Part shown: piece after piece, positions 1,400 to 28,457 of the stretch
How the letters are laid out: each line of letters starts with the position of its first letter
Position numbering within the stretch: position 1 is the stretch's first letter
Assembly (NCBI GenBank): GCA_002104905.1
Contig: MCFE01000673.1
Span: forward strand, 1-47,368
Direction of reading: 5' to 3'
Source: Basidiobolus meristosporus CBS 931.73
Lineage: Eukaryota > Fungi > Basidiobolomycota
DNA: 47,368 bases
Notes under the pieces: generated by a model
The model's input: only the letters and a program-made list of their open reading frames with translations
Databases searched by the model: none
What the model was told of the DNA's origin: nothing
Program-made: the position numbers and the translations under genes

Positions 1400-1864
1400 T
1401 TCTTGGCTATTTCTGGTACCTAGAGTACATCTTTAAGGGTCAGTGTATGGCTTCCTTCACTGCTTCTTAGGTTTACTTGGATAGTTCCTTCTCCCACTGC
1501 ATCAAGTGTTCTATTGTCACCCATGAAAACCTTCTTAATTGGAATATCTTGATATTGGGTAAAGAGTTCTTTTTGGTGTGTAAAGTGTTAAGATGCTCCA
1601 GAGTCAATATACCATGTCTGAGAATCATTTTTGTGGTCATATTAAGTGCAGATATGAATAGTGTATCTTCAGCTGTTGCAGCATTTCCATATTCAGGCTT
1701 TTTCTGCTCACTCTCTCTCTTTTTGAAGCACCAGTCTGATGTTTGTCCTTTCCTTTTGCAGTAGTTGCAAAACAGGTTGCTGTTGTTTTTGTAGGGTCTT
1801 GGGTACCTCCTTTGTTGGTTATTGCTGCTTATTAAAGCATTTTCTTCTTCCTTCTTATTGGCAC
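1400..1864 (-). pseudogene. gag: Copia gag C-terminus (CCHC-type knuckle) and protease, frameshifted
   Basis: FCNYCKRKGQTSDWC knuckle; YIDSGA readable in an alternative frame near 1600; matches the paralogue ORF 46138-47331. Confidence 0.88.
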
Positions 1865-2936
1865 TGTAGTGGGGTGACAGTGACACCCACTGACAGATGT
1901 GCTCATTCCCTTATTTTCTACTTCCCTATATCCCTACTACACTCATTTTAGTATTATCCCATTTGTCTTGCCCAATCAGTACTATCCCATAAGCCGGTTG
2001 ACTATCACACCTGCTTACCTTATTGCATAAGTTACCCCTCACTTTATGTAAGATTACTAGCTACAAGTGCTTCTATATTAGGCAAGTACCCGCGCCAGTA
2101 CCCGTGACACATGATCAACCTGTGTCACCATCCCTACCATTTCCATACCATATATGGTATCCCCATGTTGCACAGGTTTCAGAATACTGATTCCTGATTG
2201 GTTGGATGTGCTGTGCCTCTTAGAACCTTCCGGCACCTACTTAGAACATTTGTAGGTCATTCTGATGTCATTAAGATTTCTATTGATATCCGGAACCTTC
2301 TGGAACACCATGATTAGTAATCACTTAGCCAGTGAGAAAAGTATATAAGGGAGGCTATCCCTCTACAATAAATCATCATCCCTTTTATCAATATACCAAC
2401 TTGTTGATTAGTGTGATCACTGCTACCTGCTGCTACCTGAACTTCCAACCCCAGACCACAGGACACTCCCAGGAAACCGCGCTAACAGCCAACTGACCTT
2501 GGAGGCACTACTTGTGAGGAATACTCAGAGTAGGTATCTTTTATTTATATTTGATTCTTTCCCAAGTTTGTTCTTGTACAGGCAAAGATACTTTTCTGTC
2601 TTTGTAACTATTGACCACAGCTGCATTCTTATCAAGTCCCTGCTGGTGGAGTTTACAGTTGTTTTGACTTTGGAAGCTTTAGTACATTGTCATCTCAAAG
2701 GACGCTGAACCCAGCACATACTTTTGTTAAGACGCCAACTAAGTTGGGGATTGTAGCTCAATAGTTTTCCCTTGACAAGCTTGTGGCTTTATTCCCCTTC
2801 ACATTAGATTAGAGACAGAACCCAAGTATTCCTAGCAAGCTTTTGCCAGAGGTTATTGCACCCAGTGAACACCCCACACACAAAACACTTGAGAAGTGTT
2901 GGACGTATCTCTCCCTTGGACCTATACACCACCACA
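1865..2936 (+). mobile_element. LTR-A solo LTR #1 (1072 bp)
   Basis: TGTAGTGG...CCACCACA termini; TATATAA at 2342 and AATAAA at 2367; flanked by GCAC (1861-1864) and GCGC (2937-2940); near-identical copies elsewhere in the window. Confidence 0.92.
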
Positions 2937-3309
2937 GCGCTGTAGTGGGGTGACAGTGACACCCACTGACAGATGTGCTCATTCCCTTATTTTCTACTTC
3001 CCTATATCTCTACTACACTCATTTTAGTTTTATCCCATTTGTCTTACCCAATCAGTACTATCCCATAAGCCGGTTGACTATCACACCTGCTTACCTTATT
3101 GCATTAGTTACCCCTCACTTTATATAAGATTACTAGCTATAAGTGCTTCTATATTAGGCAACTACCCATGCCAGTACCCGTGTCACATGATCTACCAGTG
3201 TCACCATCCCTACCACTGCCATACCATATATGGTATCCCTATGTTACACAGGTTTCAGAATACTGATTCCTGATTGGTTGGATGTGCTGTGCCTTTTAGA
3301 ACCTTCCGG

Positions 3310-4029
3310 TGCGGTGGTGTAGAGGTACTCCTGGGAGAAGCTACACAACTCAAGGTGTGTGAGGTGTCTGATGGGTGCAATAACCTCTGTGTCTAAACTC
3401 TGTGTGTCTTGTGCACTACCCTGAAAAGCTCCTTGATGTCAGGTCTGAGATGTACTGTTGAAGGCAGGTGCAGTGATCAACTGCTAATCAATAAGGTAGA
3501 AGTGTTACTGATAGAAGGGATGATTTATTGGTGAGGGATTGCTTTCCCTTAAATACTTTTCCTGATTGCCAAGTGATTACTAATGAAAAGGTTATAGAAG
3601 ATTCTAGGTATCAGTGGAATTCTTAATGACATCACTATGAGCTAAAAATATGCCAAGAATGTCCTGGAAGGTTCTAAAAGGCACAGCACTCTCAACCAAT
3701 CAGGAATCAGTAGTCTGAAACCTGTGCAACATAGAAATACCATATATGGTATTGAAGTGGTAGGGATGGTAACACAGACCTAGGTCATGTGTCATGGGTA
3801 CTGACGCAGGTACTTGCCTTATATAGATACATCTACTGATCACAAAGCTGAATAACATCTAGGATAACTAATGCTAATAACTAATCAGGGTAAACATCAT
3901 ATGGGGATAATACTGATAATATGGGCAAAAGAAGAATGGGATAATACTGATAAGATAAAATATGGATAAGTATATCATAATGACTATATGAATAAACTTG
4001 TCTGTGGGAGGTATGTTTACCTTACCACA
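3310..4029 (-). mobile_element. 720-bp solo LTR of an LTR-A-related subfamily, antisense
   Basis: TG...CA ends; CCGG TSD at 3306-3309 and 4030-4033 (empty site CCGG at 2230-2233 in copy #1); the central part is clearly homologous to the reverse complement of LTR-A. Confidence 0.9.
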
Positions 4030-4451
4030 CCGGCACCTACTTGGAACATTCTTGGGTCATTCTGATGTCATTAAGATTTCTATTGATATCCAGAACCTTC
4101 TGGAACACCATGATTAGTAATTACTTAGCCAGTGAGAAAAGTATATAAGGGAGGCTATCCCTCAACAATAAATCATCATCCCTTTTATCAATATACCAAC
4201 TTATTGATTATTGTGATCACTGCTACCTGCTGCTACCTGAACTTCCAACCCTAGACCACAGGACACTCCCAGGAAACTGAACTGACAGCCAACTGACCTT
4301 GGAGCTACTGCTTGTGAGGAATACTCAGAGTAGGTATCTTTTATATATTTGATTCTTTCACAAGTTTGTTCTTGTACAGGCAAAGATACTTTTCTGTCTT
4401 TGTAACTATTGACCACAGCTGCATTCTTATCAAGTCACTGCTGGTGGAGTT

Positions 4452-4838
4452 TGTGGGTTATTACTGACTGTACTTGATGAGTGGGAGAGCTTGTAGGTCA
4501 AGTCAGTACCACTTGGTTCAGAATAGCTTCCGATAGAAGGTAGCAAGGTAATAAAGACTTCTGTTTATTTCGTCCAAATCTTGTTGTTCTTCCTGGTTCA
4601 ATTGGGTAGATATATATATCACTTGGAGGGGCTTAGACAATAGACAATGTGTTATAAAATAGGGGTGTGAACACCTTCCTGTTATGGTAAGTGTTCTAAC
4701 TAGATAAGGGCAGGGATAGGAGGGGAGGACGCGTGGGGGAATCATAGGGAGGGTACTGGAGGACTTCGGGTAGGACTCTGGAGGGAACTCTTGGGAGAAC
4801 TCTTGGGCGAAGAGTGGGTACTACATTGAGTACTCACA
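4452..4838 (-). repeat. Gypsy-G 3' LTR
   Basis: Direct repeat of 10838-11224, with 382/387 identity by manual alignment. Confidence 0.97.
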
Positions 4839-4882
4839 TATCCCGGGGGTTAAGTGGGAGCTTTGTCCTCAAAGTTCTTTGA

Positions 4883-6076
4883 CTAACTCGCTTCTCCAGG
4901 ATCAATTTCGTTTACAGAGCATGGGGAGTCACCGTAGTACCATTGCTGGTTGTTGCTCGCAAGGGGATCACGGGCAAGTACCTGATACCATTCGGCGGCA
5001 GAGTGGGGTGCGGCCTGTGTTGCTTGAGGGATGTTTTCCACAGAGCCAAATAGTTGGCAAACCATAGGGTTCTGGGTAAGTTCCTCGGGAGGGTCAGAGA
5101 CCAAGAAAAGGTGCAATAGCGCAATAAAGTCTTGCTTCTTTATCTTGCGAACGTTATCGGGGCTTGTCCTTTTTGTGTTCAATATGACGGCGGGGGACCT
5201 TTTGAAGAGGGCGTACACTCGGTCGGCAGTCACCCGTTGTCGATAACAAGTTTTTGCTTCTTCCAAGACGTATTGTAGTTCTTCCGTAGAAACTGTGGCG
5301 TGATCAAGGCGCTTTTGTACTCGCCTCATGGTTTCTACAGAATCCGCGGCGGTTTCTTTGGCTTCTTGGAGTTGGACTTCATACTGATTCCTGAGTTGTC
5401 ATATGGTAGACCACTGTAATAGTTGTAACACAGCAACTTGGTGGATCGCATGGGTTAACTGGCCGGTGTATTTAATCTGTTTGTGTATCTTCTCTAAGAT
5501 GGTTCCTTCTTGGAAATGTGGTTCAAGATGTTCGCAAATTTCTCGGAGGAGTCCTTCAATCGGGAGTTCTACTTCTGGTGCTCTTGCAGCTCATACCAGG
5601 TCTGCATATACCTCAACAACCGTGGTACCTATTAATGGCAAGTATGCAACAAAACAGGGGGGCTCTCGAGGTCTTGTGAGGGCGCAACAGTTGATTCCTT
5701 GTGTCTTCTGTCTGACTGTGTCCAGTATGGATACGGGAATCAGCATGGCGTCCTTCTCCTTAATGATCAAGGAACCTCCTCTTAGGTGGTACACGGTCTT
5801 CTTGGGTAGTATCTCTATGCTTTGTATTGGCGTGGGTAACTTGTCTCGTCCCTCTCTGATTGTGTCTTGTATTAGCGTGACTGCTCCGGCAAACAACTCT
5901 TCATAGGTGGCTCTCGTCGTACGTAACGCTCGTACCATATCTCTTAACACTTGCAGGTTGGTTTTGTTTTCGATATCATCTTGGTTCTTGCTAGTGGGAG
6001 GGGTATTGCCAGTTTTGGGTGAACTGTTTCCTTTGGCGCTTTCCATATGCATTCTTTTGTTCTCCCCTTTGGGCAA
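4883..6076 (-). pseudogene. Gypsy-G ORF3 (env position), unknown function, ~390-397 codons, broken by two TGA stops
   Basis: Track ORFs 5591-6076 and 4883-5329 are in one frame. The intervening DNA is open except for TGA at 5591-5593 and 5399-5401. First ATG at 6052; a coiled-coil-like segment is present. Confidence 0.8.
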
Positions 6077-6181
6077 ACTCCCTTGCGCATATTATTTGTA
6101 CCTATATTGACTAAAATCTCCTCTAATAAACTTCGAATGTATCCCGTGTCTTCCTCTATCCTTGTCCTGATAATTGTTTAA

Positions 6182-9100
6182 TCACACTTTGGTCTCAGTG
6201 ATGATCGGTGGATCATCATGAAACGGTTTCAGATGGGCTGGTGCTACGTTGCTGATTGTCTTATTATTCAGGGTGATGGTGTACTTTGGTCCATGGTCCA
6301 AACTGATAATGGTGCATGGGCCAATCCATTGGGGTGTAAATCGTGGGCGGAACTTGAGGCCTGCAATGGTTTGGTCGTACCACACCTTATTGCCTGGTTT
6401 CCACTTTCGTCTTGTTAGTTTCTCATTTTTGGGTGGAGGGGGAAGGTGCTTGTCAACATTTTCGAATACTTTTATGTATAGGTGGGCGATACGGTGTATC
6501 AACCTTTCTATATAGTCGTTATGTGTCGTCAGGGGGACACCTTCCATCGTCAATCCAGCTTCCTCCCGCCACTTGGGTCTTCGTCCATATAGGATTTCAT
6601 ATGGGGAGAAACCCGTCGTTTTATTTGGTGTGGTGCGCATTGCTAGGAGTGTCAGTGGGAGCAGCTTGGCCCATGATTGGGGAAGTTCCCAGTGAAGCTT
6701 CTCCAGTTTGCGGCAACACGTCTGGTTCATCCTCTCGGTTAATCCGTTAGTCTGGGGGTGATACGCGGCCGTGAAGACTTGTTTCACGCCCATCATTTTG
6801 CACAGGTGGGCCACGGTGTCGTTCAGGAAGGAACCACCATTGTTGGACAGGAGTATCTGAGGATATCCGTGTCGGCAGATGAGGTGTTCTAGAATGAATT
6901 GGGCGGTTGTCTTCTGATCTTTATTGCGGATGGCTTGGGCTTCTACCCACTTTGAGAAATAATCGGCAGCAATTATTATGTATTGTTCTCCTTTCTTTGT
7001 TTTCATAAAGGGGCCAACAAAGTTGATCCCTACTTGGTGGAAGGGCAGGTCAACCGGTATTGGTGCGGTTGTCCCTATCTTCTGACTTCGGTTGAATCTT
7101 TTGCAAGTGGTGCATCTTTGTAACGTATTTGTAACGTCGGTCATCATTTTTCGCCAATAAAACGTTTTTCTTAACATCTTATATGTCGTTAGGGGGTTAG
7201 CGTGTCCCAATGACATATGTCTTTCTTGTATGATTTCTTCACGGGCTGCTAGTGGGGGTACCTTGGCTCTGGACTCTCCTTGGAGGAACCATAGTCGATT
7301 TTCTTGTACTTCGTACTGACACCATTTCCTTCAAAATTCTCTCTTCTGTTTGTTTGTAACAACGTGTTCAGGATACCTCCCTTTCTTTTTAAAGCAGATT
7401 ACGTCCTCGTACTCATCACTGACACGTATTTGGCAAACGGGATAGCGACTGAGGAAGTCTGCGTCCTGGTGTTTCTTGCCAGCGCGGTGAATTATTTCAA
7501 AGTTGTATTGCTGTAGTCATAGGGCCCAACGTGCTAGTCGGCCGGTAAAGTCTTTAGTTTTCATCAGCCAGACCAGTGCGCTGTGGTCTGTTACTATTGT
7601 GAATTGGCAACCATGTATGTATGTATGGAATTGTTTAATTGAATAAACAACAGCCAGACATTCTATCTTGGGAACGGGGTAGTGGCATTTGTGTTTGTTT
7701 AGCAAACGGCTCACGTAACCGATCGGGTGGAATTTGCCGGGTTGGTGGTATTGTCCCAGTACGGCGCCTATACCGGTGAGGCTTCCATCACAGTTAATAA
7801 AAAATCTTGCATCCCAATTGAGAAATTGTAACACTGGCGGTGACGTCAGGGAATGTTTCAGCTGATCGAATGCTCTCTTTTGAGGCTCCGACCATACAAA
7901 ACACTAGCCCTTTTGCGTCAATTTGTATAGGGGGGCTGCTATCATTGCGAAGTTTTTGACAAAGCGGCAATAGTAGCCGGCTAATCCTAGGAATCCCAAC
8001 ACTGCATTAATGTCCTTTGGTGCAGGTGCATTTTGAACGGCTTTCAGGAGTGATGTAGATGGGTATATTCCATCTGCCAAGATCTCGTGGCCCAGGAACA
8101 ACAATTTTGTATACAGGAAATGGCACTTCTTGGGATGTAGTTTGAGTTGGTTCTTGAGGAGGGATGTCAGGATACGTTGCACGTCGTGTATATGTTCTTC
8201 TACATTGGGGGAATATATCGTGATGTCGTCCAGATACACGAGGGTGCATTCCCATTGTAGATTTCCTAGCACCTTGTCGATCATCCTTTGGAATGTAGCG
8301 GGGGCATTGCACAAGCCAAAGGGTAGTCGGTTCCATTTGTATAATCCAAACGATGTTATAAAAGCGGTTTTGGGTCGATCTTCCGGGGCTACTTCTACTT
8401 GCCAATACCTGGAGATTAAGTCAAGAGAGCTAAAATATTTAGCTCCAATTAATCTGTCCAAGAGGTCGTCTATTCGCGGTAGCAGATACACGTCCTTCTG
8501 GGTGACGGCGTTCAATTTCCGGTAGTCAATGCAAAAGCGTCGCTTTCCGTCTTTCTTCGGGACTATCACTACGGGGGAGGCCCACGGAGACTGGCTCTCT
8601 GTAATGATGTCGTCTTTTAATAAAGTTTCAATTGTCTCTTTGATATAGTCTGTGTCAATTTTTGAATTCCTATAGGCTTTTTGCTTGATGGGGTATTTGT
8701 CGGCGAGGTGGATTTGGTGATATACCCCAGGTATATGACCAATTACTTGGTTCTTAGAGAATACTCAGGCAAGCGGACGTATTCCTTCTAGGAATTTGTC
8801 TCGTAACGTAGGCGGTAGACCGGGGTCCACATCTAGTTTGGGGAGTTCTTCTTCTGGTTCTTTGTTTTGAGGTGGTCCTTGGTTGTTTCCGTCGACTTCC
8901 TCTAAGTTTAACAATGGCACTCCTCTAGGCAATGTCACCGTGTGTCGCCCGTTGTTAACCACTAAGCATTTCAGGCTTTGCGTTTCAAATTTTGGTGGTA
9001 TCCATACTTTAGGGATCAAGATTCCTTCCAGTTGCTTGGATGCTTTTGCTGCGGTTATCATTCTTCCGCTCGTTGAATAAGCTATTGGTGTTTCTAATGA

Positions 9101-10020
9101 GATCACCGTCTCACTGGCGGGTGGTATTTTTATCACCTTTCATGTGATGATCGGAGACTGCAACGGTTTCACCTCTTTGATTGTCACACTGTTGCTACGC
9201 GCCTGGCTCTCATCGGTGATATGAATCAGTGGGATACTCTCGGTATCCCACCTGAGTTCAGATGCACTGTAAAGTATATCCATCTTATGTTGGATAAACC
9301 AACTCTCGCCAATGAGTAAGTTGTTGGCTGCGACGGGTAGGACCATGACATCTTGGCGTATTATCAAGTTGCCTAGCCAAATGGGGCAATTGGGCACCAT
9401 ACCTACCGTTGTATCCAGTTGGTCATTCGCTAGCCGTACTTGAATGGTGTCGTTGGGGACTATATTTAGTTATAGACGTTTCGCTAATGACTCTGACATG
9501 ATCAACGTAGAGGATCCTGTGTCAATAAGGGCAAGAATCTCCTTATTCTCTATACGTACCTTTACGTATGTACCTTTATTCGGTTTTTGCAGGACCGTCT
9601 GGTTGACATGGAGGGTCGTTATCTCCTTCAATCCCTCTATCAGTTCCTTGACTAGAGCTGGGGCCAGTCCCAGTAAATTGGTTATTGGGAGGGTTGCCTT
9701 GGTTTGCTCTAGTACCTTCATTATGGGGAATAGGCCATGGGAAGACGTGCTAGCGTTCTTCATTTGCTTTAACACTTCTTCCCAAGGTTCATTCTGTACT
9801 TCTTCACCTAATTCCGCGCTCTTTCCTTTTGACGGAACCTCTACTACAGGTTCCTTTGCCTCCTCTCTAGAAGCAACATGTTGACGCTTCTTCTTCTGCA
9901 CTTCAATTGTCCTGACCAGAGGGCTTAGATTGACTGAGTCCCGTTGGCCTCCTGGCGAGGGACTCTGTCTTTTGACGCCTTCTTCTCTTTTGTGTCCGGT
10001 ACGGCTTCTCTTCCATATCG
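6182..10020 (-). pseudogene. pol: Gypsy-G pol: protease, RT, RNase H, integrase; one frame with six nonsense codons
   Basis: ALIDTGSS (PR); SPWASPVVIVPKKDG, FCIDYRKLN, VYLDD (RT); CDGSLTGIGAVL, TDHSAL (RH); GH..., C..C, AYHPQTNGLTER, WIGP (IN). Stops at 9470, 9140, 8765, 7904, 7517 and 7331. Confidence 0.96.
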
Positions 10021-10796
10021 TTTTTCACATCCATGGGCCCGGTGACCTACTTCTCCACACACATAACATGGATACTGTTGTTGCGGTCGTTCCATCTGTT
10101 GGGTCAGGACTTGAACCTGGGCCTTTAGATCTACGACAGCTTCCCAGAGTTTATCACCCTCTTTGGGGACTTCTTGGACATTGTTGATTGAGAGTTCTTG
10201 GACCTTTCGCCGTAATTCCTCTAACTCACGGTCTTTCGGGGAGGCGATTTTTCCTTTCTTACAGGGGATCCCTGTCCTTCAATCATTTGTATCACTATAG
10301 GGTAGCCCCATAGCAAGATGACCCCTCGTACTTGTTTGACCAACTCTTGCAACATTTTACATCCCTGTTGTTCTTCAGACGCCCTACGTCTTATTTCGTC
10401 GTCTAAGCCCATGATGTAATACCTCATGAGCTGTTGTTTGGCAATTTCATCCTTTGGGAGACATCGAACTTGTTGGAGAAACAGTTCAGTGTAGGCTTCA
10501 TAGCTTTCACTGCTTTTCTTCCGCGAGGACAGTAGAAGGGCTTTGTAGTGGTATCCTTTGGCATATAGAAAGCATGTCTTGTAGGCTTCTTCTAGTGCAT
10601 CCCAGTTGTCTTTGACTGCGTCTTCCAACCCATAATGCCATCGCCATGCTGACCCTTCCATATGTCTTGCAAACTCTCTTACTTTCTTATTGTTGTCCCA
10701 TCCTGCATCAACCGCAACTCTCTCAAACTTATTGAACCACTCAAGGGCTTTCTCTCTCTTTCCCTTGTATGTTTTTAGTTTGATTGTAGTAGTCAT
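9925..10796 (-). pseudogene. gag: Gypsy-G gag (capsid plus CCHC knuckle), one internal frameshift near 10305
   Basis: EWFNKFERVA...AWRW...WDALEEAYKTCF capsid-like segment; CYVCGEVGHRAHGC knuckle near 10030-10075 in a shifted frame ending in TAA at 9925-9927. Confidence 0.88.
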
Positions 10797-10819
10797 TACC
10801 TCACTTGTGCTTATTTCTG

Positions 10820-10833
10820 CAGAGACGGCACCA
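10820..10833 (-). promoter_or_regulatory. Gypsy-G primer-binding site, tRNA-His-like (TGGTGCCGTCTCTG)
   Basis: Lies 4 nt inside the 5' LTR; complementary to a tRNA 3' end ...GACGGCA-CCA, the acceptor-stem ending typical of eukaryotic tRNA-His. Confidence 0.7.
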
Positions 10834-10837
10834 AATA

Positions 10838-11224
10838 TGTGGGTTATTACTGACTGTACTTGATGAGTGGGAGAGCTTGTAGGTCAAGTCAGTACCACTT
10901 GGTTCAGAATAGCTTCCAATAGAAGGTAGCAAGGTAATAAAGACTTCTGTTTATTTCGTCCAAATCTCGTTGTTCTTCCTGGTTCAATTGGGTAGATATA
11001 TATATCACTTGGAGGGGCTTAGACAATAGACAATGTGTTATAAAATAGGGGTGTGAACACCTTCCTGTTATGGTAAGTGTTCAAACTAGATAAGGGCAGG
11101 GATAGGAGGGGAGGACGCATGGGGGAATCATAGGGAGGGTACTGGAGGACTTCGGGTAGGACTCTGGAGGGAACTCTTGGGAGAACTCTTGGGCAAAGAG
11201 TGGGTACTACATTGAGTACTCACA
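10838..11224 (-). repeat. Gypsy-G 5' LTR
   Basis: Direct repeat of 4452-4838, adjacent to the PBS. Confidence 0.97.
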
Positions 11225-11516
11225 GAGTTTACAGCTGTTTTGACTTTGGAAGCTTTAGTACCTTGTCATCTCAAAGGACGCTGAGCCCAGCACATACTTT
11301 TGTTAAGATGTCAACTAAGTTGGGGATTGTAGCTCAGTAGTTTTCCCTTGACAAGCTTGTGGCTTTATTCCCCTTCACATTAGATTAGAGACAGAACCCA
11401 AGTATTCCTAGCAAGCTTTTGCCAGAGGTTATTGTGCCCAGTGAACACCCCACACACAAAACACTTGAGAAGTGTTGGACGTATCTCTCCCTTGGACTTA
11501 TACACCACCACAGCGC

Positions 11517-12474: not shown

Positions 12475-12660
12475 GCATTTAGGTATCTAAAGTCTGCTTA
12501 ACTGCTGCAATATGATCAGATCCATAGTTCTGATTATCCTGACTGACCACTCTTGCTGAACATAAGATATCTGGACATGTTCCAAGCATGATATACATCT
12601 GACTGCTGACAATATATTGATAAGGGAAGTCAGGACTTTCAGATGGCTTCAAGCTCTGCT
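12475..12660 (-). pseudogene. Older copia RT/RNase H junction fragment
   Basis: 12560-12660 matches 44221-44330 (YQSMV..MYIMLGTCPDISY region). Confidence 0.75.
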
Positions 12661-13448
12661 GATTTTTCTATGAATAATTATTATGATGATCCCATCAAAG
12701 GGCCATTGCAGATTCTAGGTCCTGTGACTAAGCAGTATTGATTCCATCAAGTCACCATGCAAAGACCATGAAAAAATAATTGCACCCCAGATATCATAAA
12801 AAACTGGGTCAAAATTTTTCATCACAACAATACAAAAGTGGCTTTTGATTGGTCATCTGCCAATTTTCTCACTTTCTGATCCTGGACACTCTATCACTTC
12901 CTAAGTTTGTGTGCATTGATTGACTGTTGCCTCTTTTTCACACTCCTTACCACCTGACTCAACCATTTCTCTTACTTTTCATGCATACAAATTGAATTAT
13001 TTCCGTTGAAACTTCAGTTGTACCTCAATTGCTGATATGGGAAGTCAGAGCTCTCAGATGGCTTCAAGCTCTCTTGATTTTTCTATGAAGAATTATTGTA
13101 ATGATCCTGTCAAAAGGGTGTAAAAAAGTTAAAGTCCCATGACTAAGAGGTACTGATCCCATCAGGACACCATCCAGAGACCATTGCAAAATAATTGCAC
13201 CCCAGATTTCACCAAAAACTTAGTCAAAATTTTTCACCACAACAATACAAAAGTGGCTTTTGATTGGTTCCCTGCCAATTTGCTCACTTTCTGATCCAGG
13301 CCACTCTATTGCCTCCTACATTTGTGTGCATCAATTGGCTATTGCCTCTTTTTCACACTCCTTACTTCCTGACTCAACCATTTCTCTTACTCTCAATGTG
13401 TCCAAATAGATTTACTTCCGTTAAAACTTCAGTTGTACCTCAATTGGC
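12619..13448. repeat. Degenerate ~415-bp tandem duplication of a copia-RT/CACTA chimeric junction
   Basis: CAGATGGCTTCAAGCTC occurs at 12640 and 13055; both units end in AAACTTCAGTTGTACCTCAATTG. Confidence 0.8.
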
Positions 13449-16984: not shown

Positions 16985-18990
16985 TATATTGGTATGTATC
17001 AATCAAGCGCAAACATATTCTATATATTTGATGGCAAACATTACAAACAGCTAAGAGGCAAGGGCTACTTTGAAGGTATGTATGACCATGCCTTTGCTTT
17101 AGAGCTTGATGGCATCTCATTAAACAAGTACTCTACCAGCAAATCCTGCTGGCCACTGATTCTCATTAATCTGAATCTGCTGCCCATCTTATGGTATCAG
17201 AGCAATAATTTGATGGTAGACTCACTAGTATCCAGGCCTAAATCACCATCCAGCCTGGATAGCTACCTGTGTCCATTGCAGGATGATTTTTGTGTACTTT
17301 CCAGCAAGATAATAGTAAATGGCCATCATGTAAAAGTGCATATTATTAACTGCATTGGAGATACTATACCATCAGCAAGATAGTAGGTTTTTCTGGGTAC
17401 AATGGATGGTATTGCAGTCAAATGCGTGAGATCCAGGGGATTTATTCCATAACTCATACACATTATTGTAACCCAAACACCAACACTAAGAATATCATCT
17501 ACCTGCAGAGAGAACATACAGAAGTTAGTATGCAATTGCAGCAAATCTGGCAAGCTATAAGTCATTGGCCAGAAAATGGAATCAATTGGAAACCAGTGAT
17601 ACTTCAGATAGCAGGTATCTGTTGGAGCAAAAGCCGTCCACTGGGAGCAATGCATTTGCTTCTCAACAATATCCCTATACTGATAACCAAGTTGTACATG
17701 GGGCATTTCAAGTTAAATGAGTCCTTCAAAATACTGGAGAAATCTGAAAGAATTGGCAAGATATCACAGAGTATCTGCTACCCTAAGTACTTCTCACAGG
17801 CTCCAATCAATACTCATATGCATATGCAGCAATATAAATGCAAAGACTGGATGAGCTGGATATGTATTTATTCAAGTGGCGTTCTGAAGCCATTCCTACC
17901 AAGAGTACATTGGATGCATTGGGAGTCATATGTGGACATTGTAGGATTATTTATCCAGAAGCAGATCAACAATGCCAACTTGACATATCTTCAGCTGTTG
18001 TGTGAGGAGTTATAATGAGATTTGAGCAGCTATACTACCAACATAGAGCTGAACATGTAAGTCTCTGCTGCTACTGTAGCCATTCTCTACTCTCTTCCTT
18101 GGTGTGTGGTGAATATTGGGCCTTGCTTCACCTTTTGGGAATTTCCTATGGAGCAGAGGTGTGGGGAGATTGGAAGGTGAGTCAAGTTGCAGGTACTACC
18201 ATATTCCAATCTCATCAAGAATATTACCTTCAAGTCTGTCATAGATGTGATGAGTTGTCACATGGAGGACAGCCAGGAAGAGTTGCAAAATACTGAGGAC
18301 AGATGTGCACATGAAGACACCTATGTCTATGGCATTAAGAAGCTAAGCGGCCCCAATGCATGGGTAATCAGTTAAGTAATGCAAAGTTGGGCTGGGTGCA
18401 ACAAGTAACTAATTTTTACTAGGAAAACCTGTCCATGGTATGCCAGACTTCTCATGGTCATAAGCCAGCTTCTACACCATTGAATACAGAATTCACGCAA
18501 ACAAGAGTCAGACAACATCTACAAGGGGGCTAGAATCCAGTAGGGAGAAGGAATATATTGGCTAAATACCAAGAAGTTCTTTGCGGATATTCAGGAGGTA
18601 TTCATGGCAGAAGTGGTGACATCTAAGCATATGTTTGCGAGATGTCTATGTTACCAGCAATTCAAGGTATATGGCAACTTTGCAAGTATCACACTAAAAA
18701 GCTGTAAAGTTGAGGTGATAGAAGTATTTCAACTGTGGCAGGTGTGCATGCTTGTAGAGGTTAGTAAGCAGGAGGCCATAGTTTTTTTTGATTTGGACTA
18801 TATGTGGAATACTCAAGGTAGAAGTGTGTAAGCAAATCAAGTGGGGTGATTCTACAGTGGGATAGATGAATTGCACAAGGGGAGGTAGAAAAAGGAAATA
18901 TCATTTGGTAAATTGGTATGGTAGCAGTATACAGAGCTTACTCTAGGCCACCACACTGCCATAGTAATGCCTGCAGATTCTTGCTGTGAG
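16985..18990 (+). pseudogene. CACTA/En-Spm (Transposase_21/Tnp2-like) transposase, fragmented
   Basis: ELDGISL..SCWPLILINLNL, PKSPSSLDSYL.PL.D, CIGD.P, KDWMSWICIYS..L, WEFPMEQ.CG, PYSNL motifs characteristic of CMC transposases. Confidence 0.88.
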
Positions 18991-19329
18991 GCCATTGATA
19001 AACCATCAAGATTTTTTGCCATATAGGACAATTAGATGTCCTGGCCGGTTAGATCCATTTAAATTGCTGTAGAGTGCTACAAGACTGCAACAATGCCATC
19101 CAATTATTGCCACAGCACCAATCAAACCCTGTCAAGTTTTATAGCTTTATTTGGCAGTAAAATCAGCAATATGGCATTGTGATCCTGTCATGAGATTGTC
19201 AAGAGGGTTGCAAATCCAAGCTGCTGGTATTATGACAGTCTCTAAACAGGATCCTGATGGCTAATCTGAATTGGATCCACCCACAGGACCAAGTTATTTT
19301 TTGTAAGGGTGATAATGCAGCTCAATACA

Positions 19330-20270
19330 AGAAGCACTCAGACAGAGTAGCAGCAAAAGAATTGACAGTGATAAAGGAAATAGTAAAGGCAAAGTCTAAG
19401 CAAGCCAGAGAGGGATATTTAAAGAAAAGTTGCAGGTCTAACTAATAAATGCTATCAGCTCAGAATAGACTGGATCCCATAATAGCCAAGAAGAATTTTC
19501 CACAAGAAAACAGCTGTTTTCTCAAGAGTTTGGAGCACAGCCAATTGAGCTCTACTCCAGTGAGGTAGATGAGTTCGCAGAGAAAAGTAATTCATCTACT
19601 GCTGGCTCCACACCCTCCATTGTAGACACAGTGGAGATCCTACTAACAGACATAGCAATGATGTCAAGAACTTGAAAGACTATTGCAATGTCTACAGTGG
19701 AGTTTGGAACATTATTAGGTATGCAAAGAGGTTGCAGTACTTCTTTGAGAGCAGTGCTCAAAAAAATGCACTTTAATAATGCAAGAATCTATTGCAAAGA
19801 CTGACAGGCAAGGAGCTAGACTTTGCAGTGCTGGCTGAAGACCAAGACATATGGGAACCAGTGAATGAACTATGGCATAAAGCAGTGGGGTCCCTACTAA
19901 AGGTATGGAAAAAGGGCATTATGGCTAGAATGCTCATTTAATGGGGGATGTGGATGGAGTTACTTGTTGAGTGTTTGGCTGAGCTCAATGTTAGTGTTGG
20001 GTAAAGGGACTTGTATAGGTTGGTACAGCGGGAAATCAAGTTACACCTGACAACTGAACAGGAATAAGCCAATTTGTATGCATTAAAGTAAGTTCACTGT
20101 TGGAGTTAGGAAGTGTCAAGTGCAAAAAGAGGCAGTTATCAATCTATATACAGAAACATAGAAGGCAATGGAGTGCCTGGGATCAAAAAGTGAGAGAACC
20201 AGAAGGGAACCAACCAAAAGCAACTTATTTGCTGTGATGAAAAACCTTGACCAAGTTTTTTATGAAATCT
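19330..20270 (+). pseudogene. Third, more divergent copy of the ORF-X 3' part and downstream region
   Basis: Homologous to 42375-43330 (AAGAAGCACTCAGACA..., GTGGAGTTTGGAACATT, CAAGACATATGGGAACCAGTGAATGAAC). Confidence 0.75.
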
Positions 20271-20271
20271 A

Positions 20272-20520: not shown

Positions 20521-20534
20521 ATGAGATTCAATGG

Positions 20535-20995
20535 GTTTCTTAATCAATATTGCATTGGTCTTGTTGAGTGTGACATATCAAAGAGCACTTTATTCATCAG
20601 AGAAGTTTCCTTAAGTTGTTCAGCAACTCTGTTGATATTTAAATCATGGTGTTCAAGCTGCTGTATATATGTGGCTGGTAGGTCTTCAGTGTGCATACTA
20701 GATTTCTATTCTAATGAGTTCCACATGACAACATCCAACTCAACTGGTAGTTTACAGTCTAGTCTATAGAGTAGCATAAGTGGCTATGGTACAGTTGTTT
20801 TCTTAGTAGTAATTCTACCTGACCAAAGGGCAAGATATAGCTGTTGTGGCCATTGTAAAGTGTAATATTCCAAATTCTTGACTAGAGAATTGACTGGTGG
20901 ACTAAGTCCCTTTTCAACCATTCCATTGGATTGAGGGTGGTAAGCTGTTGTAAAAACAATGTATATTTTATACCTTGAGCACAATTTGTGATCAC
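20535..20995 (-). pseudogene. Ylt1-like gypsy integrase C-terminal fragment
   Basis: TAYHPQSNGMVEKG...WPQQLYLALW; colinear with 29490-29930. Confidence 0.8.
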
Positions 20996-20999
20996 AATC

Positions 21000-22534
21000 T
21001 AGTATTCCAAGCTTACTCTGGGTCATTCATACCCTCTGCATGGTGTTTCCCCATTGCTGCCAGCTGGGAATGAACGCTTTTAGGACTTTTGTTACCATAG
21101 ACAGTGGGGTTAGACCTTGTAGGGCAGTAGTTCATGTAATAGCAGAGACGCTTAACAAGAGATCTCCTTGAGTAGATTGGAGCAGATGGTCCAGAGTAAT
21201 TGGTGTAGATCTTCTTTAATGTGCTAAATGGATATCCAGTGGTAGTGATGGGATTAATGAGAAAAGACCATTCAGATGAGTAAGCCAAATCAAAATCAAT
21301 ATGCAATCAAGTACAGGTAACATGAATTGATTCCGTGCAATCAGCTTAATTTATCTGATTTTCTATGCAATATGATTGAATATCCATCAAATGCCATAAT
21401 ACCTATCATTATGTTGCGAAAGTTATCCTCAAATAATAGCTTGGTGATTTTATTGATACTTTAATCATATGTCTATGGTAATATAAGAAATCCTCAATTG
21501 ATGTGATCTGATCCATGTCAATACAGTTCAAGAGGTATCATGCAAAATATGGAAAATTCAACAATCACATTAGTTCTCACATATATTGCAGATAAGACCA
21601 GGTTGATGCCATAATACTACTGTATATTTATTCAAATCTGTCACTATGGTCCCTATACAAAGTCTCAACTCATCTTTAGTACAATCCAGACAAACCAATC
21701 CCCCAGCTCACAAGCACAGTCCTGACCAGAAATGTCAATGTTGAATTCATCTGAGTTCTTGCCAAATGTTTTAGTATGGCCCTGGTGTCCATGATGAGCC
21801 TGAATACAGATATTTGTGCATTGATCATTAATCTAGCAGAGCTGAATACCTCAGAGAGTCAACAGAGATGGAAGAATACCAGTAGTGATCTGTGGCAAGA
21901 GCTCTACATCAGGATGCCAGCAGATGTATGTAAGAAGATATACTACAAGACAAATATTGAAATCAAGAATGAGCCGTGAGCAAGGGGATTGGATAAGGAA
22001 GCTGCATGCACACAATTCCACATGCCATTTGCACAAAACAGGCTGGACATCTACATTTGTGCCTCAGCTTTGGGAACCAAGAATATTTTGAATGGGCTGT
22101 TGCCTCAAATGACTAATGTACTATTGATTGAGATTTTGCCTCAGATGACTAATGTATTACATGCTATACTAATCAAGCTAAGTGGCTTCCAAGAGCAATA
22201 TATACAGGACTCATCAAGGCAGCATTTCCAAACAACTAAACAGAGTGTAGAGTGAATACCTTGAGAAATCAGGGGCAAGCCTGAGGAGGAAGAGTACAGA
22301 GTGCAAACAGCTAGGCCCAGATTACATCAGTATGCCCTGCATGACTCCTTGCCATCTCCTGCATTGTCAGCGCACCAGTGCACATTAGTTCAAACTATGC
22401 CAACACCCTACACAAGAGCACCCCTCATCAAGTTGACATGCATCAGATCAATGCAAGCACTTCAGAGAAAAACTACCAGAACTTGCTAAACTAATCATTT
22501 AGACAAGAGTTGAATGGAACAAGCCAAGTTGCAT
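21000..22534. mobile_element. PIF/Harbinger-like element, copy A (transposase N-terminus on minus at ~21000-21306; partner ORF on plus at ~21650-22534), truncated at both ends
   Basis: Inverted homologue of 31180-32690; ORF pairs YSSEW..INPIT..G.PF and SMMSL.T.I.A..INLAEL.TS match. Confidence 0.75.
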
Positions 22535-23397
22535 TGTAGTGGTATATATGTCCAGGAGAGAGATACTTCTAACACTTCTCATATGCTTGGTGTGTGGGGT
22601 GCTCACTGGGTACAATAACCTCTCTATTTACTCTAATGTGAGGGCAAATAAAGCCATAAGCTTGTCAACTGAAAAACATTGAGCTACAATATCCAACTTA
22701 GTTGGCATCTTAACCAAAGTATGTGCTGAGCTCAGTGTCCTTTGAGATGACAGTGTACTAAAGCTTGAAAACTCAAAACAACTGTAAGCTCCTCCAGCTG
22801 GGACTTCATAAGAATGCAGCTATGGTCAATAGTTACAAAGACAGAGAAGTTTCTTTGCCTGTACAAGAAGAAACTTGGGAAAGAATCAAACATAATAAAA
22901 GATACCTGCTCTGAGGATTTCTCATAAGTAGTGCCTCCAAGGTCAGTTGGCTGTTAGTGCAGTTTCCTGGGAGTGTCCTGTGGTCAAAGTTCTGAGCTCA
23001 GGTAGCAGCAGGTAGCATTGATTATGCCAATCAACAAGTTGGCATATTGAAAAAAGAAATGAAGATTTGTTGTTAATGAATCGCAACACTTATAAACTTT
23101 CCTCATTGGCCAAGTGATTAATGATCATGATGTTCTAGAAGATTCTGGAGGTCAATAGAAATCTTAATGACCTCAGAATGAGCAAAGGATGTTCTAAGTA
23201 GATGCTGGAAGGTTCAAAGAAGCACATCACTTCTACCCAGTAGGGATCAGTATTATTAGACCAGTGTAACATAGGGATACCATATATGGAATGAAAATGG
23301 TAGGGATGGTGACATGGTTTAATTATGTGTCACAGGTCCTGGCAATTACTTGCCTACTATAGGAGCACCTACATCTAGTAATTTTACATAAAGTAAA
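22535..23397 (-). mobile_element. LTR-A copy #4, antisense, truncated
   Basis: Begins TGTAGTGG after GCAT; homologous to 15412-16310; fused to an LTR-B piece. Confidence 0.85.
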
Positions 23398-23569: not shown

Positions 23570-23901
23570 TAGATGCTTTAGCTTTCAGCAGTGCATTAGA
23601 AATTTGTTTCCAAAAATTGCAATTAAAGACACTTTGTACATTCTTTGAATGATTTGAGGCTTTGTCTCCTGCACTCTTAGGAGGGCATTCTTCTCCTATA
23701 CCAACATCCAAGGATTACTTTCTTTAGCAAGATCTTCATGTTCAACTTTCAGACTCAGGAATTATATCCATCCTGCTTTTCAGCAAAGGGAAACATTTCA
23801 ATAATAGCAGTAGTAGGTATTGCTAAGAGTGACAGCTTGGGGCTGAGAAGCAGTTGTAAGAGCTTTGAAGATATAAGAAATGACTGGGGGGAACAAGCAG
23901 A
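23570..23901 (-). pseudogene. gag: Copia gag 5' fragment, degenerate PBS and LTR end
   Basis: Homologous to 11830-12175. Confidence 0.75.
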
Positions 23902-26900
23902 TGTCCCAAGTCTTGATATATTGGTTGTGCAGGAACAGGGAGTTTAGCTAATATTGTATTTACTGAAACGTGAACTGAATTTTATTGAGGTTCCAGCAGC
24001 TCCATATATACATTTTGCCAGAGCAATTTCTGACTAATTGTATTTCTTGATGTCATTATGGCAGATGACTCATTTGAATGCATAATCAGCACCCAATTAG
24101 CTCTTACTTAATATATCTATTTCTCTGTGATATTGATTGGCTAATACTTCTGCTGACTATTACTACTAATCTGACAGATAACACTGTTATATTGATAGGC
24201 TAAACCTAAAACTAATTGATTTGACCAAAAACTGAACTAATCTATACATTCAAGCAGCAGATCATAGCATTCTTCTCTACTATAGTTGAGAAGGCTCTCC
24301 TGATTCTCTTTCTTCTAAATACAATATTTTGATGCCTCAGTATTGTTGGCAAGTCTAGCAGGCTTGAGTCTGTCTCTATGGACTAAATATTCCTGGATGT
24401 TATCTATCCACTATTTGGTAGGTTCTAAATGGACATTCTCTGATGATCTTGAAAGGTCCTGTCCATTTTATTTCAAACTTGTTCCAAGTGCTGATTCTCA
24501 GCAATACAGAGTCCCCAACTGTCAATGCTTCTTGTGATATTGTCTTATCAAATCTCTGCTTCATCTTTTCTGCACTTTGAGATACTTTGTCATGTGCCTC
24601 CTGAGGTCTTTGTTCTGGCTGCTGTTGTCTACTTGGCCAACTGAGTTCATCTTCTAAGGCCTCTGTAAGCTTTAGTTGTATGAGATCTCCTAGAATCTTT
24701 GGTTCACATCCATATACTAGGTAGTATAGCAATTATTCAGTGGTGTTGTGCACTCTAACTCAGCAGGCAAAAAGTGCTTGATCTTGATACTCATCCTATG
24801 CACTGACAGCTGCATTTGCATACTTAGTCAGCATTTTTCCTAATAATCCATTCAACTACTCAGTGACTCCATTAGTTCCAGCGGATATATCAGGGTTTTC
24901 AGCTGTTTGATCTCCTGCATTTCTAGGTAAGCTTGCATGTACTTGTCATCAAGTTCACTCCTCTACCAGATAAAATCTCTACAGGAAATTCATACTTCAT
25001 AAGGATCTCATGGTAGATGAAACTTGCAACATCTTGGCCACTGGCTACAGGTACATCCTTAGCTACTGACCATTCAGTGCCATGGTCAATTGTTACTAGG
25101 ATTCATCAGATGCATCTCCTGGTAATTGGCAGTCTTCTGATAAAGTCAATTCCCCATCTTTCAAATGGTCTTACAGGCTCCAGGGGAAAGAGTTCAGCAA
25201 TTCTCAATGGTTGGCCTTGGTTTATTTGGCAACTTGGGCATGTTTTCACTAGCTTCTCAATATCCTGTTTTATTCTGGGTCACAATTCTCTGGTTTTCAC
25301 AAGGATTTAGGCTCCTTGAATTACAAAATGTCCATATCCATTATGTGGCATATGCAATAAATCCAGGCAAGCAACATAAGGGCAATAGGCAATAGGGCTT
25401 CCATCAACAGTCTTGTAAGGTGTTTCATCAAGTACTACAACTTTGCAGGCTTCATCCCGGATTATCTTTCTGATCTCTTCATCCACCTCATTAGGAATGG
25501 CATGGTTTTCCAGTTACTCTAGTAATAAGCTAGGCCTATCTGATTCATGCACAAAGTTGAGTTACGCATTTTGCTCTAGTCTGGATAAGGCATCAGCAAC
25601 TGTGTTGTTTTTCCCAGGGCAGTAGACAGTCTCCAAGTCAAATTGCTGAATGTATTCACTCTATCTTGTCATACTTCTGAATAGTACCTTCTGAGTAAAT
25701 ACATACTTGAGTGAGGCATGATCAGTCCTTACATTGCTCCGGACTCCTTCAGTATAACATCTTCAGGCCTTCATGCAGTGTATTATGGCAAGCATCTCCT
25801 TCTCATGCACTGGATAGCTTTGTTCTGCTGCATTCAGCTTCTTAGACTCAACAGCAATTGAGTAGTACTTTCCATCATGTCCTTGGCTCAGTACCCCTCC
25901 AATTGCATAATTTGAAGCATCTGTGCACAGTGTAAACTCTTCTCTGAAGTATAGAATTCTTAAGCTTGGCAGCTTAGCAACTTCATTCTTGAGCATCTGA
26001 AATGCTGTGTCACAGGCTATGTCCCAATTCAAGGTATTTTTTTTGTTAAGAAAATCAGTTAATAGGGTTGCAATACTTGCAAAGGACTTGACCAATCTCT
26101 GATAACAGGAAACCATTCCAAGGAATGAGCTGAGTTCTGATATGCTATGGGGCTGCTTCAGATTCTTGATGACTTCACCATCTTGAAGTCTAAGGTAGCT
26201 CCTGTACTAGTCACTGTGTGTACCAGTTATTCAAAATGCTCCTTCATGAACTGACACATTACTAGCTTGTCATGCAGCTTGTTTGCTCTAAGCCCCTTCA
26301 AGACCTTTACAATGTGCATCAAGTTTTCCACTTCTGTCTTGCTGTACATCAATATGCTTTCTAGGTAGATTACCGCAGACATATCTAATCACACCTGGAA
26401 GACTGTTTGTATAAAGGTCAAGAATGATCCAGGGCTATTGGTAAGGCCAAATCCATGACTAAGTACTGCTAGTGTCTATATCTGGTTTGGAATGCTGTCT
26501 TAAGAATGTCTTCTAGTTTCAACCTGATCTGGTTGTATCCTGACATGAGGTCAATTTTGCTGAGTATAGTTGCTCTGTTGAGTTGATCCAAAAGCTCCTC
26601 AATCCAAGGTATGGGGTACTTATTCTTCATGGTTGCTGGGTTGAGGGCCCTGTAGTCAATGCACATCCTAAGAGCTACATTGCTCTTTTACACAAATGAC
26701 ACTGGTGCTCCCCAAGTTGACTTGCTGCATCTGATATATCCTTGCTCCAATAACCACTGTGTATGTCTTTTCATCTCTTACAACTTCAATGGACTCATTC
26801 TGTAAGTTATCTGACTTGCAGGAGGGTTATCTCCTGTGTCAATGGCATGATCCATGTCTCTTGCTGATGGTAGGCTTACAAGATTATCTGGAAACATGTC

Positions 26901-28457
26901 TGTATATTCTTTCAGAGGAGTCTGCGCCTTCTGGGGTGCTGGAGTAGGGGAATCCTCCTGTAATACTGCCATGAGGAACATCTGGGTACCTTTTTGAAAT
27001 GCTCTACAGGAATGTGTCTTGCTTAGTTCACTTGTTACAATTACTGGAACTGACAAAGCTGAAATCCAGTCTTATTATTCTTCATTCTTACTGGCTAAGT
27101 AATAGTGTTGATTATGTGAGAGTTCCCATCAGTTTTTGAGACTAAAGTTGATTTGGTGGGTTTCAAGTTGATTTCAGCTTTCAAGGCATATTGCTCTGAC
27201 ATGTACTCATGCAATACTCCTGAGTCAATTATAATCTTGGCAGGTCCTCCTTTGATTACTCTATTCAAGTTCAATAGCTTTCCTGAGTCCAAGGTCATTT
27301 GGATAGGTATTTTTTTGTCATGTGGTGGTTGAGTTCCAAGTCCTCTTTGAGCTTGTCCTCCATATTACTATGCTTCAGGGCTTCAATATTGCTGAAGATT
27401 CTTGTTGACTGGTGTCTATTCCTTCTCTGAGGGCAGTACTTTGCAATATGTCCTTGCTGGTGGCAATTAAAGCAAAGTCCTTTCTTCTTGCATTCTTCTG
27501 AGGTGGGATTCTTTTGTATAGTCTCTGTTGCCATTGGCACTTCCTCTGATTGACTTCTCACATAGTTATTATGGCCACTCTGATTATTCAAAGTAGGCTA
27601 CCCAACTATAGACATAGCTGAGTTTTAATCAATGGCAATCTTGATGGCTTCTTCAATATTGTGCAGCCCTCAATAGTTTGTTACAAGTTTTGGTATAAGA
27701 GTTGTAGAGGAATAGGGAGTTTAGCTAGTATTGTATCCACTAAAACTTGAACTGATTTTTATTGAGGTTCCAGCAGCTCCTTATATACATTTTGCCAGTT
27801 CAATTGCTGACTAATTGTATTTCCTAATGTAGGTTGTGGCTAATGACTCATCTGATTGCATCATCATCACCCAATAAGATTCTACTTAATATATCTATTT
27901 CTGTCTGATAAGGATCTGCTGATTCATTTGCTGACTAATGCTACTGATTCAACAGATAATACTGATATACTAATAACCTAAACATATACTATTGATTTGA
28001 CTAAAAACTGATCAAACTTAAACATTCAAGCGGCAGATCATAACAAGTTCACTTCCTTGCAAATTATTTCTTTAGCCCTTCAATACAGTATTCAACTTGA
28101 GCCCGGGGGTCCAATACTTCAATGTGCCCAAGCAGACATCTATATTCATAGATGTACTCTTCAACCATTCCTTTCTGTCTGATTGTCTTCAACTTCCTGC
28201 TTAGTAGTGTTTGCCAATGTGGAGGTTCAAGAGCATCCAGAATTGCAAACACATGCTCATCCCAGGTAGAAATTGAAGAGCATCCCATCATAATGGCTGA
28301 CCTGATCTTGTTGCGGTGTTCCAGTAATGCTGCATCTGCTGAGGCAGACTATGCATAGTGCAACCTGATTTCTGGAGCAATTTCCTTAGCCTCAATAGCT
28401 TCTTTAATCTGCAAGAGCCATACTTCCAGGTTTTTATTGACTCTACCATGGTACAGG
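23902..28457 (-). mobile_element. Gypsy-B copy 1, degenerate (3' LTR 23902-24269, PPT, IN, RH, RT, PR, gag; 5' end lost)
   Basis: Colinear with 36665-41019; PPT AGTAGAGAAGAA next to the LTR; [40 protein letters not shown] motifs. Confidence 0.9.
27679..28045 (-). mobile_element. LTR-B solo LTR (367 bp) inserted in the gag of its own family
   Basis: TG...CA ends; 4-bp TSD AGTT (27675-27678, 28046-28049); the gag sequence resumes on both sides. Confidence 0.88.

Follow-up and report, generated by a model that had tools for sequence, protein, structure and literature searches.

Candidate CpG-centred target sites of an LTR-like repeat family in a transposable-element nest of Basidiobolus meristosporus

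What decides where a repeat family inserts when the DNA around it consists of other repeats? We addressed this question in a 47,368-bp stretch of Basidiobolus meristosporus CBS 931.73 (contig MCFE01000673.1, hereafter the window), which is filled over its whole length by a nest of transposable elements. The family of interest, LTR-A, resembles a long terminal repeat (LTR). A first-pass annotation had proposed that it integrates into 4-bp sites with a CpG dinucleotide (cytosine followed by guanine) at positions 2 and 3 of the target-site duplication (TSD), and that this CpG is possibly methylated. We find the central CpG enriched over the local background when LTR-A and its relative A' are taken together, and on the six loci available the CpG-centred preference is probably real. 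The explanation we favour, with reasonable but far from full confidence, is that the integrase of the family, which lies outside the window, has an intrinsic preference for S-C-G-B (S, C or G; B, C, G or T), with the CpG at the centre of the 4-bp stagger.

Insertion sites of LTR-A and A'

The LTR-A unit measures 1,072 bp and has the ends TGTAG...CYACA (Y, pyrimidine); it starts with TGTAGTGGGG and its 3' end reads CACCACYACA. Copies and LTR ends were set by comparing the window with itself, by searching for the terminal motifs and by nhmmer with a profile built from the copies, and the nhmmer scan of the window with this profile returned zero further fragments. The tetranucleotides that the first-pass annotation had listed as flanks and TSDs are all present at the positions given for them.

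Two complete copies stand head to tail, in the layout GCAC, copy 1, GCGC, copy 2, GCGC, with a single GCGC between them. Copy 1 (1865-2936, plus strand) is a complete solo unit, TGTAGTGGGG...CACCACCACA, whereas in copy 2 (2941-11512, plus strand) two nested insertions separate three pieces, 2941-3309, 4030-4451 and 11225-11512. The left TSD of copy 1 (GCAC, 1861-1864) equals GCGC with one CpG-type G-to-A change; the tetranucleotide between the copies (GCGC, 2937-2940) and the right TSD of copy 2 (GCGC, 11513-11516) are intact. A paralogous copia copy that is 89% identical carries the corresponding empty site, GCGC at 46976-46979. One of the two insertions in copy 2 is A' (3310-4029, minus strand), a 720-bp unit that is about 75% identical to LTR-A, starts with TGTGG and is conserved at both termini (TGTGGTAAGG...CACCACCGCA). 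It lies between CCGG at 3306-3309 and CCGG at 4030-4033, and its empty site, also CCGG, is found at 2230-2233 within LTR-A copy 1. Two diverged relatives with conserved termini therefore both have CpG-centred sites.

Copy 3 (15412-16483, minus strand) is a complete solo unit, 92.8% identical to copy 1, and lies between CCAT (15408-15411) and CTGT (16484-16487). Since CA faces TG at the same position in TSD copies that were identical at insertion, the site must have read CCGT when it was hit. The complementary decay of the two TSD copies had been recognised in the first-pass annotation, and an empty site not used there can be added: an 87%-identical paralogue reads ACAG at 41123-41126, which is CTGT on the reverse strand. 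The alternative to CCGT, two adjacent non-CpG transitions in one TSD copy, comes out less likely by a factor of some tens; this figure is a rough estimate made by hand from mismatch rates, includes the background prior and is not a computed likelihood. Together, these three comparisons of filled and empty sites show that the TSD of LTR-A is 4 bp long and derived from the target. An origin of the "TSD" bases in the element itself was rejected, because the full tetranucleotide is already present in the empty sites.

The remaining three loci are incomplete at one end. Copy 4 (22535-23394, minus strand) lacks its first ~180 bp, and its intact 3' end is flanked by GCAT (22531-22534), for which a paralogue reads GTGT on the reverse strand (31179-31182). 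The pair has GCGT as its probable ancestral state, judging from the sequences, and this may still have been the reading at insertion. The gypsy-related repeat copies at 20552-22529 and 28587-32683 share two segments whose order is reversed: the integrase core precedes a 1.5-kb segment in the first and follows it in the second. The 1.5-kb segment may be the LTR of that element. This reversal makes 31179-31182 a weaker stand-in for the empty site of copy 4. Copy 5 (28458-28573, plus strand) comprises only the first 116 bp, and its intact 5' end is flanked by CAGG (28454-28457). Its paralogue reads CTGG on the reverse strand (36664-36667), and, as had been conceded in the first-pass annotation, no CpG can be reconstructed here except by a transversion.

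Copy 6 (43523-44222, plus strand) comprises only the first 700 bp and is preceded by TGGA (43519-43522). The annotation had counted it as a misfit, and TGGA indeed contains no CpG. However, TGGA is also the end of a purine run, GAGAGGAGGGTGGA (43509-43522, plus strand), which lies directly upstream of copy 6 and consists of purines at 13/14 positions, a level reached by 0.27% of the 14-mers in the window. If this run is a polypurine tract, as it may be, TGGA would be no TSD and hence no misfit, copy 6 would be a 3' LTR, and a sliver of the LTR-A internal region would lie on its left.

The sites thus amount to six loci and six or seven events, seven if the tandem pair counts as two. The target was CpG-centred when hit at three of the six loci (GCGC, CCGG and CCGT) and probably at a fourth (GCGT); CAGG was not, and TGGA is possibly no TSD. 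This gives a CpG centre at 3-4 of 5-6 informative loci. The earlier tally of six fits among seven insertions was generous, as CAGG does not fit, which leaves 5/7 insertions or 4/6 loci. The CpGs that were hit have 0-1 other CpG per 100 bp of flank and stand alone within about 200 bp.

The tandem of copies 1 and 2 deserves separate consideration. Its junction, CCACAGCGCTGTAG (2932-2945), contains a perfect 10-bp palindrome, ACAGCGCTGT, and formally resembles the junction of a two-LTR circle. The two copies are sisters: they diverge by 4.2% and share nine derived non-CpG states, compared with only one for each alternative grouping. LTR-LTR recombination was rejected as the origin of the tandem because it is unable to yield LTR-TSD-LTR. 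The tandem may stem either from one active lineage that struck this tetranucleotide twice or from a tandem duplication bounded by the 4-bp repeats. With a strong tetranucleotide preference and rare sites (the window holds 24 GCGC and 30 CCGG), a second insertion into the freshly duplicated site would be unsurprising.

CpG decay and enrichment at the target sites

The weight of a central CpG depends on how rare this dinucleotide is in the surrounding repeats. At a GC content of 41%, the window contains 364 CpG in 47,368 bp, an observed/expected ratio of 0.18, together with an excess of CA (1.37) and TG (1.30); the scarcity of CpG described in the first-pass annotation is therefore borne out. 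CpG is depleted in all four NCG contexts (N, any base). In alignments of paralogous repeat copies, 81% of CG cytosines show C/T mismatches, as opposed to 16% of those in CHG and 17% of those in CHH (H, A, C or T). This restriction of C/T decay to CG, combined with the depletion in every NCG context, indicates that the repeats underwent CpG-specific methylation and deamination. A plant-type CHG component is absent from the decay pattern in the paralogue alignments of the window.

To obtain a background for sites that may themselves have decayed, we scored a CpG as ancestral when CG was present in either copy or when the two copies formed a complementary TG/CA pair. Across 25.6 kb of paralogue alignments, such CpGs occupy 1.2-1.4% of dinucleotide positions, or about 2% after correction for decay in the same direction. 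At p=0.02, the binomial probability of at least 4/6 CpG-centred loci is 2.3e-6, which is still small when ~100 possible post-hoc patterns are allowed for. Counting only the loci where CG is still intact, the probability of at least 2/6 is 5.7e-3. For the CpG-centred fraction, the 95% interval runs from 22 to 96% at 4/6 and from 12 to 88% at 3/6, corresponding to at least a six- to ten-fold enrichment. A comparison restricted to pyrimidine-purine steps gives the same picture: CG makes up about 8% of them, and CA, TG and TA together are about 11 times commoner than CG even ancestrally, so that the probability of finding CG at 4/4 such centres is ~4e-5 and at 4/5 ~2e-4. We consider chance an unlikely source of the CpG-centred pattern.

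Other LTR elements in the window served as controls, and none has a CpG at its site. The young Ty3/gypsy element gypsyB (4452-11224, minus strand), the second insertion nested in copy 2, has a 5-bp TSD, GAGTT, and LTRs at 4452-4838 and 10838-11224 that are 98.7% identical. A chromovirus-family solo LTR (27679-28045), nested in a copy of the same family, has the 4-bp TSD AGTT/AGTT, so LTR-A is not the only family in this genome that makes 4-bp duplications. The chromovirus flanks read TATT and CAGA.

Identity of the units and of the surrounding elements

LTR-A shows a feature of solo LTRs, namely TG...CA termini with a short terminal inverted repeat. The terminal inverted match, TGTAGTGGGGT...ACACCACYACA, holds at 10/11 positions (about 11 bp), and beyond it a comparison of the first 300 bp with the reverse complement of the last 300 bp gave no inverted repeat better than shuffled sequences. 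In one orientation, a TATATAA box followed by AATAAA can be read from the sequence. No open reading frame (ORF) long or conserved enough for protein comparison was found in LTR-A. The likeliest identity of LTR-A and A' is that of solo or truncated LTRs from an LTR retroelement family, either Gypsy-type or another that bears an integrase; between this assignment and a Ginger1-like DNA transposon, the LTR appears much the more probable.

Several candidates for a fuller element were considered and rejected. Copies 3 and 4 are not the two LTRs of one element, as the host sequence on one side of copy 3 resumes on the other. Copy 5 abuts a gypsy RNase H-integrase fragment (28587-30062), but this integrase-like stretch is neither a Ginger-type transposase nor the pol of LTR-A, since RNase H homology precedes it and no 3' LTR-A follows. 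The repeat at 41020-43477 was discarded as an LTR-A internal region because two other copies of it continue into the region upstream of copia gag.

The repeat just mentioned is about 2.4 kb long, carries a 415-bp tandem duplication and occurs at 12618-13446, 13088-15408, 41020-43477 and 19308-20270. Given these two copies that reach the sequence upstream of copia gag, an unusually long copia LTR or untranslated region is its probable identity. It includes a 245-amino-acid ORF (14755-15492, minus strand) that has no Pfam match.

Pfam matches in the window identify a mixed population of elements around LTR-A. Ty1/copia gag, protease and integrase are present at 400-1383 and 45440-47331, with a copia reverse transcriptase at 44203-45128, and a chromovirus-type Ty3/gypsy element is present in two copies at 36176-41020 and 23901-28458. 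Fragments of an EnSpm/CACTA transposase (Transposase_21) lie at 16994-17383 and 35344-35757 within two inverted copies of a 2.3-kb repeat, and a PIF/Harbinger DDE domain (DDE_Tnp_4) lies among LTR elements at 32718-33161. An Rfam scan of the window gave zero matches. The window has no Alu/7SL match, and the proteins of its copia, chromovirus, EnSpm and Harbinger elements are without close relatives in the databases, so a human origin was discarded. The LTRs of gypsyB are 387 bp long. Its integrase has its nearest entries in coral, sponge, fish, tick and spider at 36-42% identity, with none above 42% among 5.8 billion proteins; the matches include a 600-amino-acid integrase plus OTU protein with a Ginger1-like architecture.

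The chromovirus and copia proteins have plant or fern sequences as their nearest entries (43-48% identity), although the decay signature of the window is CpG-only. Close relatives of window sequences turned up only on two short MEGAHIT contigs of the ENA metagenome assembly ERZ27274739. Contig k141_126514 carries a copia element with 83% nucleotide identity to that of the window and a CpG observed/expected ratio of 0.15, and contig k141_117284 carries a chromovirus with 69% nucleotide identity and a ratio of 0.0, which suggests that the sample contains DNA of a related large-genome host. LTR-A is present on neither contig; at the LTR-A target position, the copia of k141_126514 reads GCTC on the reverse strand. 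An exact scan of viral contigs with the LTR-A 5'-terminal 20-mer likewise gave no match.

Explanations and known systems

Under the intrinsic preference that we favour, the integrase would make 4-bp staggered cuts centred on CpG, so that every integration would duplicate the tetranucleotide. As CpGs in the repeats would be heavily methylated and prone to deamination, the two duplicated CpGs would decay independently to TG or CA, and this independent decay would produce mismatched pairs such as CCAT/CTGT and GCAC/GCGC. Every insertion would also regenerate two copies of a rare preferred site, and a second hit into one of these TSD copies would create the LTR-GCGC-LTR tandem. Our analysis points to the preference as a property of the integrase, which may read either sequence or DNA shape, and it could represent the central pyrimidine-purine rule of 4-bp-stagger retroviral intasomes taken to an extreme.

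Several observations weigh against this reading. The sample consists of six or seven insertions in one window, the pattern was spotted post hoc, and a Fisher test against the four control sites alone gives only P=0.07. CAGG at copy 5 does not fit, as its reconstruction as CpG requires a transversion, and neither does TGGA at copy 6 unless it belongs to a polypurine tract. At copy 4 the paralogue is only 74% identical and its homology stops at the LTR end; the GCGT that the first-pass annotation derived from GCAT and GTGT therefore stands as a probable ancestor, and its CpG could have decayed before insertion. Copies 1 and 2 could go back to a single insertion that was then duplicated in tandem, and the count of events would drop by one. 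Moreover, no LTR-A internal region, integrase, primer-binding site or paired LTRs were found in the window, and exact scans of metagenome and prokaryote-genome contigs, with the 5'-terminal 20-mer and with a 24-mer invariant in five copies, gave no LTR-A match.

How well do other explanations account for the same sites? That there is no targeting at all, only coincidence and post-hoc pattern finding, gains something from the small sample (n = 6-7), from a hypothesis formed after the data, from one locus possibly counted twice and from one weakly reconstructed site. We nevertheless hold it to be highly improbable: P lies between 2e-6 and 6e-3 depending on the strictness of counting, the figures for the stricter background stay at or below ~1e-3 with ~100 patterns allowed, the CpGs that were hit are isolated, being the sole ones in about 200 bp, and the same motif is the established target of a related enzyme family, Ginger1. 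A less extreme alternative is that only a generic rule for 4-bp staggers operates, V-Y-R-B (V, A, C or G; R, purine), and that the apparent CpG specificity is small-sample luck. This rule is documented in prototype foamy virus (PFV), murine leukaemia virus (MLV), porcine endogenous retrovirus (PERV) and xenotropic MLV-related virus (XMRV; PMC4422553), all four CpG sites fit it, and the paralogue of CAGG, CTGG, has a TG centre. Yet CA, TG or TA stands at the centre of an LTR-A site only where CpG ancestry is in evidence, even though such steps are ~11 times commoner, and the probabilities of ~4e-5 (4/4) and ~2e-4 (4/5) for the pyrimidine-purine centres being CG make luck a quite unlikely explanation.

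Two further alternatives accept the CpG and explain it differently. LTR-A could be a cut-and-paste element akin to Ginger1, non-autonomous and dependent on an integrase-like transposase for its movement; TSDs of the CCGG and CCGT type would then be explained directly. It has TGTNR termini and a 4-bp TSD, CCGG and CCGT are exactly the two Ginger1 targets, 7/7 copies are single units without paired LTRs around an internal region in 47 kb, and an element-TSD-element tandem would be natural for a site-specific transposon. We regard it as improbable, given an inverted repeat of ~11 bp rather than 40-270 bp, the GCGC and GCGT sites, which are not among the reported Ginger1 targets, the LTR-like succession of TATATAA and AATAAA in one orientation, and the 13/14-purine run before copy 6, which resembles the polypurine tract ahead of a 3' LTR. 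Nor is any transposase linked to the unit; the stretch beside copy 5 is a gypsy pol fragment, with RNase H homology preceding.

The other alternative is the mechanism offered by the first-pass annotation, in which the integrase, or a reader fused to it or recruited by it, recognises 5-methyl-CpG and steers the element into silenced repeats. To judge from the C/T mismatch of 81% at CG against 16-17% elsewhere and the observed/expected ratio of 0.18, CpGs in these repeats evidently carried germ-line methylation, so the sites were very probably methylated when hit, and CopiaMBD provides a precedent for a retrotransposon that uses a methyl-CpG reader (PMC6673714). However, nearly all CpGs in the repeats decay, so any CpG-seeking integrase would meet methylated CpG by default, and the sequence does not separate a requirement for 5-methylcytosine from its tolerance. 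Ginger1 and ZAM reach CG-containing 4-bp specificity by plain sequence preference, and tethering through a methyl-CpG-binding domain (MBD) is regional and directed to CpG-dense DNA, with no base-exact centring on isolated CpGs; we therefore think methyl-dependent targeting unlikely. In a more specific version, to which we assign a slim chance, the integrase would have no tethering domain and would itself read a methylated CpG step lying in the middle of the cut, by the 5-methyl groups or by the shape that these give to the DNA. The effect of CpG methylation on retroviral integration in vitro was the subject of 1992 work by Kitamura, Lee and Coffin in PNAS (89:5532), in which methylation reportedly created preferred sites. 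Were such reading to occur here, the silencing mark of the host would become a base-level insertion address, and silenced repeats a self-renewing landing pad, with two new methylatable targets per insertion.

The intrinsic S-C-G-B preference would have consequences of its own. In a CpG-methylated and CpG-depleted genome, it would limit insertions to a small and shrinking set of sites, promote tandem and nested self-insertions, and turn the TSDs into built-in clocks of CpG decay. LTR-A would also offer a clean setting in which to ask whether an integrase tells methylated CpG from the unmethylated form.

Among known systems, CopiaMBD resembles the mechanism of the first-pass annotation in that a retrotransposon family is proposed to choose its sites by methyl-CpG. 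It carries an MBD fused next to the integrase, and its enrichment is regional, for CpG-dense methylated DNA within 150-1000 bp (PMC6673714; de Mendoza et al. 2019). It differs from LTR-A in lacking a base-exact CpG in the TSD, whereas the LTR-A flanks are CpG-poor, with 0-1 CpG per 100 bp at every site. The retroviral intasomes offer a closer parallel at the level of the cut. Those of PFV, MLV, PERV and XMRV bend the target sharply and select a flexible pyrimidine-purine step central to the 4-bp TSD (PMC4422553; Serrao et al. 2015); in retroviruses with 4-bp TSDs, T at the first position and A at the fourth are disfavoured (PMC4422553). GCGC, CCGG, CCGT and GCGT all conform to the resulting V-Y-R-B pattern, while CAGG fails at the centre and TGGA throughout. 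The retroviral preference is, however, weak and spread over CA, TG, TA and CG, whereas LTR-A apparently uses CG only, despite its rarity.

LTR target motifs are generally palindromes (PMC3276498), and the errantivirus ZAM has an integrase that binds and targets CGCGCg (PMC2527525); the targets of errantivirus subgroups are TATA, CGCG and ATAT (PMC5408687). Like LTR-A, these are LTR retroelements whose integrase selects a short palindrome (in ZAM, one of G and C), with 4 bp duplicated and repeated use of the same site. The register differs, as the CGCG of the ZAM subgroup would have GC at its centre and LTR-A has CG. ZAM also requires a second binding site 40-56 bp away (PMC2527525, PMC5408687). 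None of the LTR-A sites lies within CGCGCG; the CpG-centred ones are isolated SCGB tetranucleotides. To our knowledge, Drosophila, the host of ZAM, has essentially no CpG methylation. ZAM is, in our analysis, probably a looser parallel than Ginger1.

The Ginger1 DNA transposons are the nearest precedent, and one that the first-pass annotation had missed. Across 112 Hydra copies, their 4-bp TSD is CCGG in 75% and CCGT/ACGG in 24% (PMC2836005). They have a Gypsy-type integrase, TGTNR ends like those of Gypsy LTRs, and terminal inverted repeats of 40-270 bp (PMC2836005; Bao, Kapitonov and Jurka 2010); the string "methyl" has 0 occurrences in that paper (PMC2836005). Ginger1 transposases are integrase-like, with YPYY and GPY/F motifs plus an OTU or Ulp1 domain, and the window holds no coding region linked to LTR-A. 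The likeness to our sites is direct, with CCGG at A', CCGT at LTR-A copy 3, and a central CpG in a 4-bp TSD. The TGTNR consensus also fits the TGTAG of LTR-A and the TGTGG of A', but it is common to most Gypsy LTRs and so does not discriminate. The differences are that Ginger1 moves by cut-and-paste and has its long inverted repeats, compared with an LTR-like unit and ~11 bp in LTR-A, and that LTR-A also inserted at GCGC and probably at GCGT, with S rather than C as the first base; CAGG is likewise no Ginger1 target. A CpG-centred tetranucleotide target is thus an already known property of one integrase lineage, and its appearance here is modestly new. If the pattern holds genome-wide, LTR-A would be an LTR-type element with a CpG-centred specificity so far described for Ginger1 cut-and-paste transposons, and target choice would be linked to a particular integrase lineage across the divide between LTR elements and DNA transposons.

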